From: Trichosphaerium sp. ATCC 40318 | Taxonomy: Eukaryota > Protista > Tubulinea | Reading direction: 5' to 3' | DNA: 64,000 nt | Assembly (NCBI GenBank): GCA_038496445.1 | Contig: JALMLS010000097.1 | Location: forward strand, 1-64,000 | Shown: piece after piece, positions 25,413 to 59,459 of the stretch | Layout of the letters: the number at the start of each line of letters is the position of its first letter | Position numbering within the stretch: position 1 is the first letter of the stretch | Notes under the pieces: generated by a model | Database searches by the model: none | Told to the model about the DNA's origin: nothing | What the model saw: the letters and a program-made list of their open reading frames with translations, nothing else | Position numbers and translations under genes: made by a program

Positions 25413-26307
25413 TTAAAGTCCTTTGAACAATTTCCAACTGAAAAAATCACGTTTTCCATTCGTATATGTACAATTATTACATAGCTTACCTCCAATATTC
25501 CAATACTTGTACCTTCCATTTAAGACTCCTTTTACATAAAAACATTCCTCACGTTTTATACCGGTCCACCAAAACCTTGTACACCGTCCATGCTTTTCAT
25601 CATTAACATAGTTGAACTGTTCATCCAAAGCTCCATTTTTTTCGTACCATTTCAGATAAACACCTTGCTTCTTACCTCCCTTATATACAACTTTTTCTCG
25701 TATCTTTGTATTTTCGAAATAGCTTGTATATGTACCTTCTAACATATCATCTACATAAGAACATTGTGAACGTAAAGTACCATTTTGCCGCCAGTTTTTA
25801 AAAATTCCTTCTTTTTTCCCATTTACATAAAATCCAGTCTCATACAATTGACCGTTCATATACCATTGCTTCCTCTCTCCTTGCATCTTACCCCTTACAT
25901 AGAAGGATAGGTCACGTAATTGAATCTTATAGCCTGTGTGCCACTGTTTGTATTCGCCATGTAGCTCTCCAACGATATAAAAACAATGACTCACCAAATC
26001 TGTGTATTCTCCGTCCATCTTACCATCTATAAATTGACATTGTTTAACAACACTTCCTTCTTCGATTCCTAACCATTTACCGTGTTTATTCAAGTCCTTA
26101 TTAAACCTTGACGTTATCGCTGCTTGTTTCGATAATAAAGGCCATAAAATAAATACATAAAGGTCAATTTCGACTATATACACGTGTAGCTCTACTGGAA
26201 GGCTTAAAAGTCGATTTTTCTTCTTGTTACTGTGTAGCTAGTGTTTGGTGAATAAAAAAACCGTTTAGAATTGTACACGTGTTTATTACCTCAATAGAAG
26301 CTGCCAT
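25413..26307 (-). CDS. MORN-variant (YwqK-like) repeat protein with F-box-like N-terminus
   Basis: Repeats such as GKMQGERKQWYMNGQLYETGFYVNGKKEG; N-terminus MAASIE|LHSNKKKNRLLSLPVELHVYIV; single 5' intron. Confidence 0.8.
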
Positions 26308-37000: not shown

Positions 37001-38406
37001 TGACGGTACAAATGATGCACCACAATTGTTTGAAGCCGATGTTGGATTCTCTATGGGTATCTCTGGTACAGAAGTAGCAAAGGATGCTTCTGATATTATC
37101 TTGTTGGATGATAACTTCAACTCGATTGTAAAAGCCGTCATGTGGGGTCGTAACGTATACGACTCTATCCGCAAGTTCGTACAATTTCAGTTGACAGGTA
37201 AGTAAATTTTTTACTCGTATCACGTGAAAATCACGTGTTTTTTTTTCCTTTTTTCGCCGCTGATTTTCTTCTTTTAGTCAATGTCGCTGCTGTTATTGTA
37301 GCTTTTGTCGGTGCTGTAACTGAAGGTGACAGTCCATTGAAGGCTGTACAATTGCTTTGGGTAAACTTGATTATGGACACTATGGCTGCACTTGCTCTCG
37401 CTACAGAACCGCCAACGGAGAAACTTCTTGAACGTAAACCATACGGAAGAAAAGGTCAATTGATTACTTACAGGTACAACCGTCGTTTCCTTTGCTCTCA
37501 GCAACACTATATTGTTTTTTTTGTACACTGTACTTACCCTCTCACTAGAATGTGGCGTTTCATCTTTGGTCATGCTGCATACCAACTTATTGCTCTATTT
37601 ACAATATTATACTTGGGTACACACTGGTTCCCATGGTTGTACACAGGTGTCGATCTTGACTCTACTTACAAGACTGAATTGATGGTTACAATCATCTTCA
37701 ACTCTTTTGTATTCTGTCAAATCTTCAACGAATTCAACGCAAGACGTCTCGATGACAGTACGTCCAAAAAAAAAAGAAACATCACGTGATTTTTTTTGAG
37801 AAGAATTCTTTCTAACTAGTTTTGTTTTAAAAAAGCTTTGGACGTATTCGGTGGATTATGGAATAACTACATCTTTATCGGTGTCATCGTTATTACTGTT
37901 ATTGTACAAGCTATAATCGTTCAATTCGGTGGTAAAGCATCACAAACTGTCGGCTTGAGTACGTCCTATACACATCTTGCGCTTTACCATCTAAAGTTCC
38001 CTGTAGACTGGAAACAATGGCTATTCTGTGTTGGTGTAGGTGCCGTCGAAGTACCATGGGTACGTAACTATGTCTTGTTACTTTTTTGCTCTTTACCTAA
38101 CTGTTTGAATAGGGTTTCTTTTTGAAACTCATCCGTGTTCCTGATGAGCCAACTCATGAGTCAGCAAAGGCTGAACCTGATGAGAGTACTTCTCTTCTTG
38201 GCGCTAATGGACGTCGTGAAGTCGAATCTGAATCATCTAGCGATGAACCTGAACTTGACGACTTTGATGCAATAGATGCTGAAAAAGCAAGAAGAGAAAG
38301 AAGTCGTGAGAACTGGGGTCGTGCTAGAAAGGTTCTTTCACGTATCCAGCTTGTAAGATCTCTCAGAAATTCTACGCGTCGTGCTGAACAAATTGAATTG
38401 AGTTAA
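34035..38406 (+). CDS. PMCA: P2B-type plasma-membrane Ca2+-ATPase (PMCA)
   Basis: [57 protein letters not shown]; basic amphipathic C-tail [19 protein letters not shown]. Confidence 0.97.
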
Positions 38407-39581: not shown

Positions 39582-40823
39582 ATGGAACAGCCGGAATCCA
39601 TTCTTGTTACGCTCCCACTTGAAATTATCGTTACTATTCTTAAATGCGGGCAGCATACGCTTCGTTCAGCTCAAACATGCCGATTATTGCGAGAAATAGT
39701 AACCGAACACGTCGGATACGGTTGTATAAAAGTGAAGGATGAAGAGGAACTACTCCGTCTTTCAGGGAGCCCTCTGCTCCGAAATACTCGAATTTCTTTG
39801 TGTGACTTATCCGAAATAGTAAAAGATAGTCATCTTGCCTTGCTTAAAGGTGTTCATACAATCGATATTGGATGTTGCAAGGGTGTTACAGATAAAGGGC
39901 TATCTGTGTTAAAAGGAGTTCACGAAATAAATGTGAATAGCTCCTTGGTCGGGCGTATTGAGGTATTGGCAGGTGTACATACCATCGACTTGTCCAAGTG
40001 TCAACGTATATTAGATGAAGGAGTAACGGCTTTGGCAGGTGTTCATACCATTGATTTATCAATGACGAAGGTCACAGATGTAGGTATCAAGGCTTTATCC
40101 GGTGTACACAAGATTAGTTTAGCTTTTACAAGAGTTACAGATGAAGGAGTTAAGGCTTTGGCAGGTGTTCATACTATTGATTTGAGATTCACAAAAGTTA
40201 CTGATGAGGGCATCAAGGCTTTAAAGGGTGTACATAGTATCTGGATGAGAAAATGTTCTCATATATCAGATGAAGGTATAAAGGAATTGACGGGCGTCCA
40301 TGACATCGACGTATCAAGTACAAGTATTACAGACAAAGGTATCGAGTATTTAGCTAGTGCGCACGTGGTTGACTTATCAGATACACGTGTTACAAATGAG
40401 GGTTTGAAAGCATTGACCTGTGTTCAAGACCTTAAATTAGCACGGACTTCTATTATACATGAAGGTTTCGAGGTATTAAAGGGTGTACCTAAACTGGATT
40501 TATCCTTCACATCTATTACAGATGAAGGGTTAAAGTTTTTAGCTGGAGTTCGCTCAATTAAGTTACATTTTACGGGTGTGACAGACGCTGGTATTTCAGC
40601 GTTGGCTGGTGTACATACTATCGGGCTCAGAGGCTGCGGTTTGATAACCGATGAAGGTATTTCAGCGTTGGCTGGTGTACATGAAATTGATCTACGTGAA
40701 ACAAAAGTTACAGACAAAGGAGTCAAGGCTTTGATTGGTGTACACACAATAAATTTATATGGAACGGCAGTGACACAAGAAGGACTGGATGCTTTGGTTC
40801 GTACACACAATGTAATAGTATGA
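39582..40823 (+). CDS. Intronless F-box + LRR protein (LAGVHTIDLSxTKVTDEGVKA repeats)
   Basis: LVTLPLEIIVTIL...AQTCRLLREI, followed by about 15 repeats of 22-23 aa; 413-aa ORF. Confidence 0.9.
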   Translation: MEQPESILVTLPLEIIVTILKCGQHTLRSAQTCRLLREIVTEHVGYGCIKVKDEEELLRLSGSPLLRNTRISLCDLSEIVKDSHLALLKGVHTIDIGCCKGVTDKGLSVLKGVHEINVNSSLVGRIEVLAGVHTIDLSKCQRILDEGVTALAGVHTIDLSMTKVTDVGIKALSGVHKISLAFTRVTDEGVKALAGVHTIDLRFTKVTDEGIKALKGVHSIWMRKCSHISDEGIKELTGVHDIDVSSTSITDKGIEYLASAHVVDLSDTRVTNEGLKALTCVQDLKLARTSIIHEGFEVLKGVPKLDLSFTSITDEGLKFLAGVRSIKLHFTGVTDAGISALAGVHTIGLRGCGLITDEGISALAGVHEIDLRETKVTDKGVKALIGVHTINLYGTAVTQEGLDALVRTHNVIV

Positions 40824-41463
40824 ATGGGATTCTGCTTGAAGATATTAACAGATTGAGTAAAAATGGCTAAGAGTACTCTTAGAACGCACAACTAAAACAA
40901 AATTGACTTTTAGAATAAATCTAAATTAGCCCAAAGTATGTTTACTCACACATTGCTCCCTCACTCACACATTGCTCCTCCCACACTCACACTTTTAATG
41001 TTTTTCATACTTCTTGTCATTGTTTATCTAGTAATGTACTGTTTAGACTCTGCCAGGAATAAACTTGAAGCTATTATGAGGCAATTTATATTCCCGCATT
41101 TTTCTATCAACCAGTGTACCTTTTTTTGTTCAGCTACCTAGGTTAGGAAAGATTAACTATCCTAGAATTGTTTTACGATAATTCGTGTTCCTTACATCAT
41201 TGGTTGTTATCTACATGCCATACAGCGCTATGTACGTTCTCTGTGGAAATAAAAAACCAGAGTCTTATGCTGTATCTATTGCACTTACATAGGTTATTTG
41301 CTTGAATTTGTTTCGGGTGTTAACGACTATATACTTTACAACCAACAAGAGGGTGTCAATAAAAAAAACCGTGAAATCAAGCACGTACTCGTCGACAAAT
41401 CTCAGCGATTCAATGAAAACTAAATTTGGGTTTTTCAGTCCATGTCAGTCAATTCTGTTTCAG

Positions 41464-42233
41464 CAAACTTACAAGCTTGTAAAATGGCCAGTATTACAAC
41501 TATACCAACGGAGCTCCTATTAGATGTATTTTCGTTGTTTAAAGCGAGCCAACTTCCTTCTCTTCGTTTAATTTGTTCACAATGGCAATCAATAGCTTCT
41601 TCTGATACTCTCTGGCGACCTTTATTCTGTTCTCGTTTTAAAAACGTTAGCATGGACCAAAAACAGTCAGTTATCATACAATACGCACGAGAACACCTAA
41701 TAGTACACGCTAAGAACGGTATGGACAGAAATGTAGTACCATACGTTGTAAACGATACAATCGTATGCCACAGAGGCAGCTATAGCTGGTACATACCAAA
41801 TATAAGCGAGCTAGCTAAGAAAGGGGACTCTGTATCACTTGAAGAAGCAAAGAAGTATATTTTCGATGTAGCAGAATCCGACTCGGAGATACTAAAGTGG
41901 AAGCTACCCAAGTCAATGCAGAGAAAACACTGGCGTGACTTTGTTACATTGAATATTTCTGTTAGGAGCACAAAAGAACAAAGAGTATATGGTTGCTCAC
42001 GTGATAGAACAGGATGGATGGCCACAGTCACGTGGTTTGCGATGCAAATACTTGTTAAAGGAGAAGTTGTTGCAGAAAAAGTTTTACAAACAAGGAACCC
42101 ATTTAAAGGTTATCAAGAAAGTTTTGAGCGTCAAGCTCAAGCATGGTATGATAAAAAAGGAGGTTATGTTATTATACATCATGCTGATATTGGTTGCCTT
42201 TTATTTGTAAAACCGAATGAATTGTATTGGTAA
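41464..42233 (+). CDS. Intronless F-box protein with unknown C-terminal domain
   Basis: ITTIPTELLLDVFSLFKASQLPSLRLICSQWQSIASSDTLWRPLF; likely start Met near 41484. Confidence 0.85.
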
Positions 42234-43301: not shown

Positions 43302-43375
43302 GAACGATGCTGGGGATTGAACCCAGGACCTACCGCGTGTAAGGCGGGCGTGATAACCAACTACACTACATGAAC
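43302..43375 (-). tRNA. tRNA-Val(TAC), acceptor stem mispaired (possible pseudogene)
   Basis: GTTCATG TA GTGTAGTTGGTTATCAC G CCCGC CT TAC AC GCGGT AGGTC CTGGG TTCAATC CCCAG CATCGTT C; intact A and B boxes. Confidence 0.85.
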
Positions 43376-55234: not shown

Positions 55235-56830
55235 ATGGCGAGTATCAAGGCATACGTTCCCTCCGAATTGTACAACACGCTAGAAGCGAACTTACAACGA
55301 TTAGATAATTTCGCTCGACGAACTGTATGCTGGAGACACAAAAGCCGTCTCAGAGTTTACTGATAGCGTAATTAAACGTGGATTTGCACTTTTAAGCCTT
55401 CAAAAGGAAGAAAAAACCACAAAATTGGCACAAGACAATATAAACCGTACAGTTACCGCCTGTAACGGTTTCTTCTCAGCAAATGACAATTACAAGCAAC
55501 ATTACTTCTTTCCTCCTGTATTTGGGTACACGTCGTTACCTCACAAGGAGGGATTTCGATATTTGACAGGAAGGTAATGTTTGGTTTTTTTTCTCTAAGT
55601 TTTTTTGGCTAAGTTTTTTGCAAGTCATTTCGTCTATGATATTATGCCGAATCACTTTCAGAATGTGTTAAGTGTATTCTTGGCTATGGAAAAAGTGTTG
55701 ATTGAAATAACTGGTCACGTGTCAAAAGGTAAAAAGTGGTTCAGTGTTTCAATAGATGAGTCTTTAAGCTAATGCTCACTCTTTTTAAGACTTATTCGGT
55801 GCTACTGTTAATGAGCTTGGTAAAAAGATGTCTTTACCTTGTCTTCAAGAAGACGACAAAGAAAAGCACTATGCAATGGTAGATATTGTTAAATATTACA
55901 ATACAGGCACGTGCCTTCGAAACGAACATAATTGCAGCTACTAACGTTAAAAAAAGAAATCTTAGATGCAACAAATAAAAAAGTGCCTGAGATGAACTGT
56001 ATGGAGCATTATGATCCAGGTACTGTTTAATTTTATACATTGAGCTAGTTTACCTTAAAGTTGCTGATAGTTCAAGGTCTGTTTTCGTTAAACATTGTTT
56101 CCACTGAACCTGGGCTTCAACTGTATGATCACAACTCAAACGCATGGCTAGATTGCCCACCTGATACTGCTGTAATATGGTGCGGTAAAGCTGCAGTTGA
56201 AGCGTCAAATGGTCGTATTAAACCTGGTAAACACCGCGTTCTGTACTCGGAAAAACCCAGAATCACTATTTGGCTTGAGGTGCGTTTCAGTATGTTTTTA
56301 TTCATCATGGTATTACTCGTTGCAAATTGCTTCAAACTGATGAAACCATTACTTCTGTTGGATATTTATACCTGTTGTAGCTTATTACTTCAAACCAAGT
56401 ACCACCAGAGACTCATGAGAAAGGTATATTAGCATTTGATACAAGGAAGAAAGATGAGGTAGCTGATAAGATGATTACTGCTGAAATGTACGATGATTGG
56501 TTTGAAATCGAAAAAGTGACTGGTATTCCGTACGTGTATTGTTTTGTGAACTACAGCGTTGTGTAATTTGATGAAACATAATTTTTACAAGCAATTTATG
56601 ACAGTGTGTTCTCTCGTGTACTGTATGATTTATCTTAAAATTTTCTTGCTTTTTTTTTGTTTTTTTTTTCTTGGTCTAACAAAAATAGTTGGTCCAAACG
56701 CCGTAACAGATGGGTACCAGAAGCCAAAAAAGCTTTTGAAAAACGTACTAATATGAAAGCTGTAACATATAGAGAACATAGAAGAGGAGCAAAAACGACT
56801 CCAATAGCACAAAATGCTCAGCCAACTTAA
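55235..56830 (+). CDS. 2-oxoglutarate/Fe(II) oxygenase (IPNS/DIOX-like)
   Basis: EHYDP|GLFSL (HxD), PGLQL, KHRV, PRIT. The 3' end is approximate. Confidence 0.8.
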
Positions 56831-57127
56831 ATAAATTGTAGCTTAGCAAAGGATTGAAGAACTTCGGTTGTATTAAAGCGTTTTTATTTTCAGTCTGCAA
56901 ACAAGAAACAATCGGAACGAGTTAGTTATAAGACTTCCAGTTACACTTTCGCCTGCCAAAATCCGTTAACGTTAAATTAAATTCTTGATAACTTGTGATG
57001 TTACCAGAAAACTCGGTGAATTTTAGGACTTTTTTAACTGACATTTGGACATTGTTGTGCACTATTCATTGCATCTCAATTCAGTTGGTTTAAAAAAACG
57101 TGACGAGGAGCTAATAAACTGAAAAAC

Positions 57128-59036
57128 ATGGATATGCTACCTCTTGAGCTGTGGGTGGCTATTACGACTAAAATGGATAGAAAAACGGCTAGTGTTGCTT
57201 GTTGGTATCTTATTATCGTTTAGATAGTGTAAACATGCTTATCATTACTGTTAGCGTTTGTAGACTACTTCATGAGTTGTGTTGGGATGAATTAATAATA
57301 CGTATCGGCTATACGCGCTTCACGTACGTTTAAGACGTAAAGGTGGCCAACAGGGTCCTTTTGAAGGTGTTTTAGTAATTCAAATGCGTAGCGCTGCACG
57401 AATAGCACAAGACGGCTCAGTTTCCATCATTTTAGGTTCCTTATACGTTAATAGTGCCATAGTCGCATCCTAAACCTCATAGATAAGCCTAGTACCCTCT
57501 ACGAAGTAGGGAATGGTGTTGTATTCACTCAGCCTAAACCCAAAATGACGCCAAGTTTCACTTTAGAAGATGACGAATCATTAGATCCAGAGATGGTCTA
57601 CAACTTTCTTATCAATGCCATCGACCTTTCTATACGCTCTGCAAGAATCAAAGGTAACGGTGTATCTATTATGCTTCAAGAGATTTGACGAACGTTGAAG
57701 GAAGGCATCCAATGCGTCTGATAGTTGTTGTGCCCAATACGTTTACTGTTTTTCGGAGGACCTTGGTTCTTCAAGCGACACAGGAGCTCAGACATAAATT
57801 ATTGCGTATTGTAACAGATTCAACTTGTGCTGTTATTGGTTTTTTACTTAGCAAACCTGAGTTGCAAAAGGTGCGAGCATTGTTAATGAATCACGTGATT
57901 TTGTTTCAAAAACAACTTAATATTTCGTCAATGTATTTTTTCATTGTAAATGTCTTTAGGCCTTAGTTTGTGTGTCTGTATTGAATGAAACAGATTCCCG
58001 ATCCAAAACACAATGGGAAATTGATGAGGTAGCTAAGTTAACTGAGCTCGTTAAATCACAGCTTTGACACCTTAGAGATCTAACTATATTGTAGGGTGTT
58101 GTGGAGGAGAAGGCATGTTTTGACAAACCTCCTGAAGAGTATCATCTGGTTGTGTACTCAAATGAATCTAAGAAGATAGATATTGACGGTGGACCTTACT
58201 CAAAAGTGTATAGGTTTAACGAAAAAACAGAAGAGGAGCACACACTTGCAGTTGCGTTTTAAAAAAAAAGAAAAATAATCTTCGAAAAGTAATGTTAGTT
58301 TTTTCATCTTGTAATTAATCAAGTAGGGCGCTGCGTTATATTTTGCTATTCTTACTAGCCTTCCTCTTTTTAAACATGCTCCAAGTATTCATGAAGAAGT
58401 GATTACTCTTGAAAATACAAAGCTAACTATCTCCTTGGAAACTGCAGGCACAAAATAATATAGATAACTTAAATTTTTTGGGGTTTTCTTTAACACGTAT
58501 TCCATAGGAGGTGTTGCTACACCCATGATAATTAAGGGATCAATGATACCGACAAAGAGAAGCCAAGTATTCACAACTTATAGTGATAACCCACCTGCCA
58601 TTCTCATTCAAGTACTACGACATGCTTTCAATTAGTTTGATTTTTTTTAATTCGTCTTTCAGTTTTTTGAAGGAAATAGAAGCCTTACACGTGATAATGT
58701 TAAGATTGCAAGCTATGAAGTTGCAGGCATTGTGCCTGCACCAAGAGGTACAAAAATGATAAGTTGTTAAAAACATGTGGCAGGATCAAACCAACTTCTT
58801 TAAAATTTAGGTGTTCCTCAGATACAAGTCACAATGAATATTTCAGAGAATATGTGTTTCAGTGCAACTGCTTGCGATAAAACACAGGGAATGGTACACC
58901 ATTCATTGTTTAAATCCTAAAATCAAACATTGGAAATAGTTAACACCTGTTTTAGCCACGTGTCGGTACACATCTGATCCAAACTTACCCAGACGTCCAG
59001 AGAAAATCATATTTACATGATTCTTGTTTCTTGTAG
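57128..59036 (+). CDS. F-box fused to degenerate Hsp70 (partial NBD plus beta-sandwich substrate-binding domain)
   Basis: [12 protein letters not shown]...C|VCRLLHEL; [12 protein letters not shown]...[15 protein letters not shown]; ISLETAG|[34 protein letters not shown]|[12 protein letters not shown]...IVPAPR|GVPQIQVT. Confidence 0.85.
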
Positions 59037-59459
59037 AATATGACATATTTCAAGGAGTAAGGTTGCGATAACGCACAAAAAAAACATATTGTTAATCAAT
59101 TAAGTAAAAACTTGGATTATTTGAAGACAATGATGTCTACCTTGACATTTGCATTCATATAATTGTAAACTACAATCTTTGGCTTCTAGAATGTGACCTT
59201 TCCGTGATAAAATTACTCACAAAGAGTCTATCCCAACAATCAATGACAAGAAATAAAAAGTGTAGTTCCCAACAACTCGGTTACTAGCCATTGCAAAAGT
59301 TTATGATAAGTGGTAGCTTAATAGAATTCAGATTTTTATTAAATAGCGACAGTACTGTTATCACATTTTTCACAAAGAAATAAATCATATGGTGAACAAA
59401 AACCGGCACGCTGAAAAAAAAAAAGAGCTAATAAGTGTAATCAAATCCAAATGAATTGT

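Follow-up and report, generated by a model that had tools for sequence, protein, structure and literature searches.

F-box proteins are the substrate receptors of SCF ubiquitin ligases, having a C-terminal binding module, and define what the ligase degrades. In the FBXO class this module is of neither the WD40 nor the LRR kind. In one member, the SCF quality-control receptor Fbs1 (FBXO2), an N-terminal F-box is followed by a β-sandwich binding module; Fbs1 recognises a mark of misfolding, exposed N-glycans, through its FBA sugar-binding domain and passes the clients to SCF. Recognition of unfolded segments is also coupled to ubiquitination by Hsp70 and CHIP/STUB1, where an ATP-cycling Hsp70 offers its EEVD tail as docking site to CHIP, a separate U-box ligase. 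For unfolded chains in general, the cell's sensor is the β-sandwich of the Hsp70 substrate-binding domain (SBD-β). Some atypical or truncated members of the family, Ssz1, HSPA14, STCH/HSPA13 and Hsp110, have lost part of the canonical cycle, keeping a folded nucleotide-binding domain with an SBD function that is reduced or absent. The β-sandwich by itself, as in the engineered lidless SBDs of DnaK and human Hsp70, retains peptide binding in constructs (PMC6017645), these being laboratory fragments of weak affinity and with no ligase adaptor.

The gene located at 57128-59036 on the plus strand of the window, that is, the whole stretch of 64,000 nucleotides analysed here, brings elements of these systems together in a single predicted chain. 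Like Fbs1, it has a β-sandwich module, here preceded by a probable N-terminal F-box, but this module derives from Hsp70 (relic ATPase and SBD-β) instead of being an FBA domain. Compared to the CHIP/Hsp70 pair, putative ligase adaptor and SBD are in one chain, lacking EEVD, lid and ATPase, and the ligase would be SCF. With canonical Hsp70/Hsc70 it shares the SBD-β, including the eukaryote-specific pocket residues (A and Y at the arch) and the FTTYSDN and PAPRGVPQI motifs, as well as weak colinear remains of the ATPase, whereas its phosphate loops and catalytic region have been replaced and it lacks about 150 ATPase residues, the lid and the EEVD. The situation is the opposite of that in the atypical Hsp70s, with the SBD kept and the ATPase eroded, and the fusion is a natural one, unlike the engineered lidless SBDs. 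Functionally, the closest parallel would be an FBXO-type receptor and, as a concept, the Hsp70-CHIP pair in a single chain.

Reading the three plus-strand frames across 57000-59300 gave an open frame of 12 exons encoding 409 amino acids, from the ATG at 57128 to the TAG at 59034-59036, exactly the coordinates of the spliceable frame proposed in the preliminary description. The window is eukaryotic DNA with a G+C content of 37.5%, and the 11 introns of the gene measure 47-89 nt, ten of them with GT-AG borders and one with GC-AG. A stop in frame lies 33 nt 5' of the ATG, and the 60-nt 5' UTR covered by RNA holds no ATG. The RNA evidence consists of assembled contigs of two public runs, X1 and X2, which were compared with positions 56600-59400. 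An initial splice model had placed the acceptor of intron 3 at 57509; it was replaced by 57482 from the RNA contigs, adding 9 amino acids. The features are as follows.

Exon 1, 57128..57204, plus strand: start ATG and first half of the probable F-box (LPLELWVAI...); from the open frame and splice model, with the joint 57204/57255 in the X2 contig.
Exon 2, 57255..57323, plus strand: second half of the probable F-box, then IRIGYTR, which may be what remains of the first phosphate loop; joints in the X2 contig.
Exon 3, 57392..57435, plus strand: joints 57323/57392 and 57435/57483 in the X2 contig.
Exon 4, 57483..57653, plus strand: putative ATPase relic with most of subdomain IB missing; RNA joints, colinear in hhalign.
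Exon 5, 57701..57870, plus strand: best-kept segment of the putative ATPase relic (VVVPNTF...), at positions 141-195 of our own Hsp70 HMM.
Exon 6, 57960..58028, plus strand: place of the second phosphate loop, with the motif replaced; RNA joints and alignment.
Intron 6, 58029..58094, plus strand: removed in the X1 contig but kept in that of X2.
Exon 7, 58095..58250, plus strand: GVVEEKA at its start, the remainder being the unrecognisable 45-residue stand-in for lobe II.
Exon 8, 58327..58447, plus strand: last ATPase helix (GAALYFAIL), linker-like EVITLEN and the first SBD-β strands (LETAG); phmmer.
Intron 8, 58448..58507, plus strand: GC-AG intron, removed in X1 and X2.
Exon 9, 58508..58611, plus strand: SBD-β with FTTYSDN; Pfam HSP70 positions 401-434 (15 bits) and phmmer alignment.
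Exon 10, 58663..58747, plus strand: SBD-β with FFEGNR...PAPRG; Pfam HSP70 positions 436-462 (16.1 bits) and phmmer alignment.
Exon 11, 58811..58893, plus strand: SBD-β with VPQIQVT...DKTQGM; phmmer alignment and RNA joints.
Exon 12, 58956..59036, plus strand: tail of 26 amino acids and stop TAG; joint 58893/58956 in the X2 contig.

All 11 predicted splice joints were seen across the RNA contigs of X1 and X2, and an open frame over 12 exons with matching spliced RNA far exceeds what chance would give. One X2 contig of 1421 nt spans 57068-59099, extending from 60 nt 5' of the ATG to 63 nt 3' of the stop, and carries 10 of the joints, including those between exons 1 and 2 and between exons 2 and 3; because it carries their joints, the F-box and the Hsp70-like exons are on one RNA, as had been proposed. 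The X1 contig lacks intron 6, while the X2 contig retains it, with two extra bases, and its retention brings a stop in frame after residue 212. The only contig that reaches the F-box, that from X2, is also the one that retains this intron, and thus the fully spliced message is in no single contig and the frame is the union of X1 and X2. The GC-AG intron, the sole one with a donor other than GT, is spliced out in both runs. The exons are short, which together with the lack of a single fully spliced contig could favour the reading that an F-box gene and an Hsp70 pseudogene lie here as separate units, or that the assembly is mis-joined; this reading is extremely improbable, given an X2 contig in which the exons are joined from 5' of the ATG to 3' of the stop, and an exon 2 within which the F-box gives way to the first Hsp70-like residues. 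The neighbouring genes are on separate RNA contigs, the upstream one ending near 56845 and the downstream one lying near 59194-59316, and therefore the F-box/Hsp70 gene is not a read-through product.

Regarding these neighbours, the upstream one (56061-56845, plus strand) has an exon coding for a 2OG-Fe(II) oxygenase domain (56061-56432), and the X1 and X2 contigs there end near 56823-56845, probably the 3' end of this oxygenase gene. At 59194-59316, an X2 contig of 558 nt, in the opposite orientation and with both ends loose, probably contains an exon of the downstream gene. Four differences from the window are common to X1 and X2 (58173, 58184, 58193 and 58387), so both runs seem to come from another strain than the assembled one.

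The F-box, divided between exons 1 and 2, lies at the N-terminal, at residues 2-39. Neither half gave a Pfam match when its exon was searched alone. Using the first 49 residues, with the exons joined, the F-box-like family PF12937 matched with an E-value of 4.9e-5 (23.4 bits against a cut-off of 24.3, profile positions 2-39 of 47) and the F-box family PF00646 with 5.2e-4 (20.3 bits against 20.5, profile positions 3-37 of 43). The F-box of the preliminary description is then backed by two significant E-values from nearly end-to-end matches, but both scores stay just under the Pfam curated cut-offs, by 0.9 and 0.2 bits, respectively, and residues 2-39 are a probable, putative F-box whose HMM evidence is borderline. 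Searching the PDB by phmmer with the same 49 residues returned no F-box chain, only one chance match, as is usual for a short and divergent motif. The layout is that of the F-box family, having the N-terminal motif followed on the same transcript by the Hsp70-derived module at residues 40-383. The LPxEL ... CRLL pattern is common to this motif and to two other F-box open frames of the window. One of them (39582-40823, plus strand) is intronless and encodes 413 residues; its LRR_6 repeats score strongly (119 bits) and its N-terminal F-box-like match weakly (17 bits), and it is a predicted F-box/LRR gene. The other (41442-42233, plus strand), also intronless and with 263 residues, scores clearly as F-box-like (40 bits), and its C-terminal part was not recognised; a word search of 5.8 billion proteins gave no homologue for it.

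After the F-box, a relic of the Hsp70 ATPase occupies approximately residues 40-265, with about 235 amino acids in place of about 385; by the alignments, the roughly 150 missing residues were lost mostly from the upper lobes IB and IIB. No exon of residues 40-252 matches Pfam HSP70. In a local pairwise alignment to the nucleotide-binding domain, the z value is 2.3 and 16 of 500 shuffles reach the score, while the control alignment to the remainder of Hsp70 scores below the shuffle mean. With our own HMM, the ATPase segment ranks third of 1001 (itself plus 1000 shuffles), at the expected place (profile 141-195), and hhalign aligns it colinearly with positions 12-279 (P 0.0047). For exon 5, the top four PDB matches are all Hsp70-superfamily chains at matching residues, with E-values of about 0.7, the chains of Ssz1 and Hsp110 being the top ones, and by language-model features 94 of its 100 nearest named Atlas clusters are Hsp70. 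Exon 7 is not recognised in the same Atlas comparison (best score of 0.43) and has no Pfam match. Taken together, the homology of residues 40-252 to the ATPase (p approximately 0.003-0.03, plus the features of exon 5) is weak but consistent.

The nucleotide-binding motifs DLGTT (phosphate-1), NEPTAA (connect) and DLGGGTFD (phosphate-2) are absent, their places being taken in the alignments by IRIGYTR, VTDSTC and SVLNETD, respectively. The eroded ATPase claimed in the preliminary description is there in its replaced motifs, IRIGYTR at residues 41-47 and VTDSTCAV at residues 153-160, but its homology is weaker than was implied. Likewise, IRIGYTR is present, but its exact pairing with GIDLGTT is plausible and not demonstrable, because MAFFT E-INS-i, run with the whole protein and 25 Hsp70s, aligned the N-terminal 60 residues otherwise than hhalign did; the residue-level pairing at this end of the relic is uncertain. 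The shrinkage of lobe II holds, with only 45 residues between GVVEEKA (residues 201-207) and GAALYFAIL (residues 253-261). The predicted nucleotide-binding-domain relic is then shrunken and catalytically dead.

The SBD-β was compared with a eukaryote-type Hsp70 (from a contig of a viral collection), the DnaK of E. coli K-12 and 160 further Hsp70/DnaK genes. By phmmer, residues 252-383 match positions 371-497 of the eukaryote-type Hsp70 with 109.5 bits, and DnaK 387-496 is matched with 78.9 bits and zero gaps over 110 residues. Scored with an HMM of these 160 sequences, the whole protein reaches 111 bits, nearly all from the SBD-β segment; in the single-exon Pfam search only exons 9 and 10 match HSP70, weakly, and those of the ATPase half do not. 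Over the 110 aligned positions, 54 are identical to the eukaryote-type Hsp70 and 46 to DnaK, while these two references share 76 between them, so that the identity to the eukaryote type is 49%, against 69% for DnaK and eukaryote Hsp70. Residues 275-383 are clearly assigned by these alignments to the Hsp70 SBD-β, of the cytosolic eukaryote kind, which by the same identities has evolved faster here than in canonical Hsp70s.

The β-sandwich with its hydrophobic pocket and arch is recognisable in the chain. Of the 11 positions at which DnaK contacts the peptide in the DnaK-peptide crystal structure, 10 hold the eukaryote-type residue or a conservative substitute (L, T, A, F, T, T, Y, I, I and I, equivalent to DnaK 401, 403, 404, 426-429, 436, 438 and 472), the sole change being DnaK Q433 to P. 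The interdomain linker DLLLLDV of Hsp70 is EVITLEN here. The conservation of the SBD-β that had been claimed is borne out, with FTTYSDN present and PAPRGVPQI formed by splicing across intron 10, except for the motif VFEGNR, since the spliced product has QFFEGNR instead. The end of exon 11 corresponds to the last recognisable Hsp70 residues, equivalent to about 497 in the eukaryote protein, and the chain ends 26 residues later, its final β-strand being unrecognisable. This tail, encoded by exon 12, resembles nothing in Hsp70 (local alignment score of only 16 against Hsp70 residues 491-560), and neither the helical lid (SBD-α) nor the C-terminal EEVD is present, in agreement with their reported absence. 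With neither the ATPase motifs nor the lid, the protein is Hsp70-derived and not a functional Hsp70 chaperone, and cannot be ATP-driven.

The two halves of the Hsp70-derived module have decayed unequally. Identity to the eukaryote-type Hsp70 is 49% in the SBD and 14/55 (25%) in the ATPase segment that aligns best (Fisher p 0.004), whereas both parts are equally kept between canonical eukaryote Hsp70 and DnaK (76/110 and 39/55). There are zero indels in the SBD relative to bacterial DnaK, against the large losses of the ATPase half. Neutral decay would erode both halves alike, and thus the better preservation of the SBD argues for selection on the peptide pocket, together with the intact frame. 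The selective retention of the SBD proposed beforehand agrees with this imbalance and with the 10 of 11 retained contacts. In addition, the window and the X2 allele have 14 differences, approximately 6.5 synonymous and 7.5 non-synonymous (dN/dS about 0.33, binomial p 0.02-0.07), a purifying signal that is suggestive only.

Relatives were sought in several collections. Exon 5, searched against 1.84 billion representative proteins, gave no true relative and only one spurious repeat protein; the 93-residue open frame around it matched nothing in a word-indexed protein collection, and exons 4 and 5 had no match in metagenome contigs, all these being short queries, which detect close kin only. The lineage seems poorly represented, and therefore the lack of relatives says little. 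By tblastn, the 64-kb window holds no paralogue of the 409-residue protein, and a literature search returned no relevant paper on a fusion of F-box and Hsp70 domains.

Considering the domains together, the F-box would dock on Skp1 of the SCF ubiquitin ligase and the β-sandwich would bind extended hydrophobic peptide stretches with no ATP control, the dead ATPase relic keeping the two apart as a rigid spacer. Proteins exposing hydrophobic segments, or a narrower client set evolved from them, would then be delivered for ubiquitination; the preliminary description had suggested unfolded or foreign proteins as the putative clients. We give this reading, a predicted SCF receptor for exposed hydrophobic segments, a probability of about 0.45; the role is inferred because F-box proteins and Hsp70 SBDs so act elsewhere. 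Several points speak against it: the borderline F-box, the divergence of the SBD and its unrecognisable last strand, the retention of intron 6 in the contig with the F-box, the weak selection signal of the 14 allelic differences, and the absence of any orthologue or paralogue among the searches. Moreover, model peptides are bound weakly by lidless SBDs and exchange rapidly, the KD being approximately 1.3 mM for a human construct and the koff of lidless DnaK 12.5 per s (PMC6017645). High affinity in a simple receptor is thus not what one would first expect, and a useful receptor would have to rely on avidity, on a specialised partner or on the novel tail.

The same weak affinity, favouring a dedicated or avid partner, gives room to another reading, in which the SBD engages the Hsp70 system or one specific partner, for example the hydrophobic interdomain linker of canonical Hsp70, bringing Hsp70 to SCF with or without a client. 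Contacts of this kind, between the SBD of Hsp70 or BiP and the interdomain linker of another protomer, are reported in PMC3696110 and PMC4608358. The pocket is of the eukaryote cytosolic type, and the SBD diverges faster than in canonical Hsp70s, as expected after specialisation; on the other hand, the sequence indicates no particular partner and the pocket residues are almost the same as in the generalist parent. Recruitment of Hsp70 is, then, credible but rather unlikely. A chimera produced by domain shuffling, lineage-specific and expressed but functionless or decaying, would account for the extreme erosion of the ATPase half, for the GC-AG intron and the retained intron of the assembled transcript, and for the lack of relatives in the three collections searched. 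It is on the whole improbable: a functionless young chimera fits poorly with the unequal preservation of the halves, which neutral decay of the whole gene would not produce, and it also has against it the frame of 409 codons unbroken over 12 exons, the SBD with its pocket retained and free of indels, and the excess of synonymous differences.

The borderline F-box scores leave some weight for a Skp1-binding F-box working outside a cullin ligase, or for a non-working F-box attached to an ATP-independent holdase, and some F-box proteins do have non-SCF roles, such as yeast Rcy1. This is decidedly unlikely, as the matches to both F-box models span the profiles and have significant E-values, and the motif is N-terminal, as in typical F-box proteins. 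Returning to the SCF receptor, its strongest form, a natural one-chain counterpart of the Hsp70-CHIP triage pair, in which the lidless SBD would be a degron-agnostic receptor and the ATPase a spacer, is doubtful. If true, an SCF ligase could ubiquitinate any protein exposing Hsp70-type hydrophobic segments. The fusion would show chaperone-type recognition wired to ubiquitination without ATP cycling, co-chaperones or CHIP, and would give a compact natural template for an adaptor of the kind "degrade what is unfolded". The gene is, besides, a clean case of differential domain decay, in which the engine was lost and the sensor kept, useful for the question of the minimal functional Hsp70 SBD.

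Elsewhere in the window, an open frame at 25413-26183 (minus strand) encodes 256 residues with MORN_2 repeats, and an exon at 37235-37789 (plus strand) encodes the membrane region at the C-terminal end of a P-type cation ATPase (93.7 bits). The sole RNA family found in the window by Rfam is a tRNA-Val (anticodon TAC) at 43302-43375, on the minus strand.
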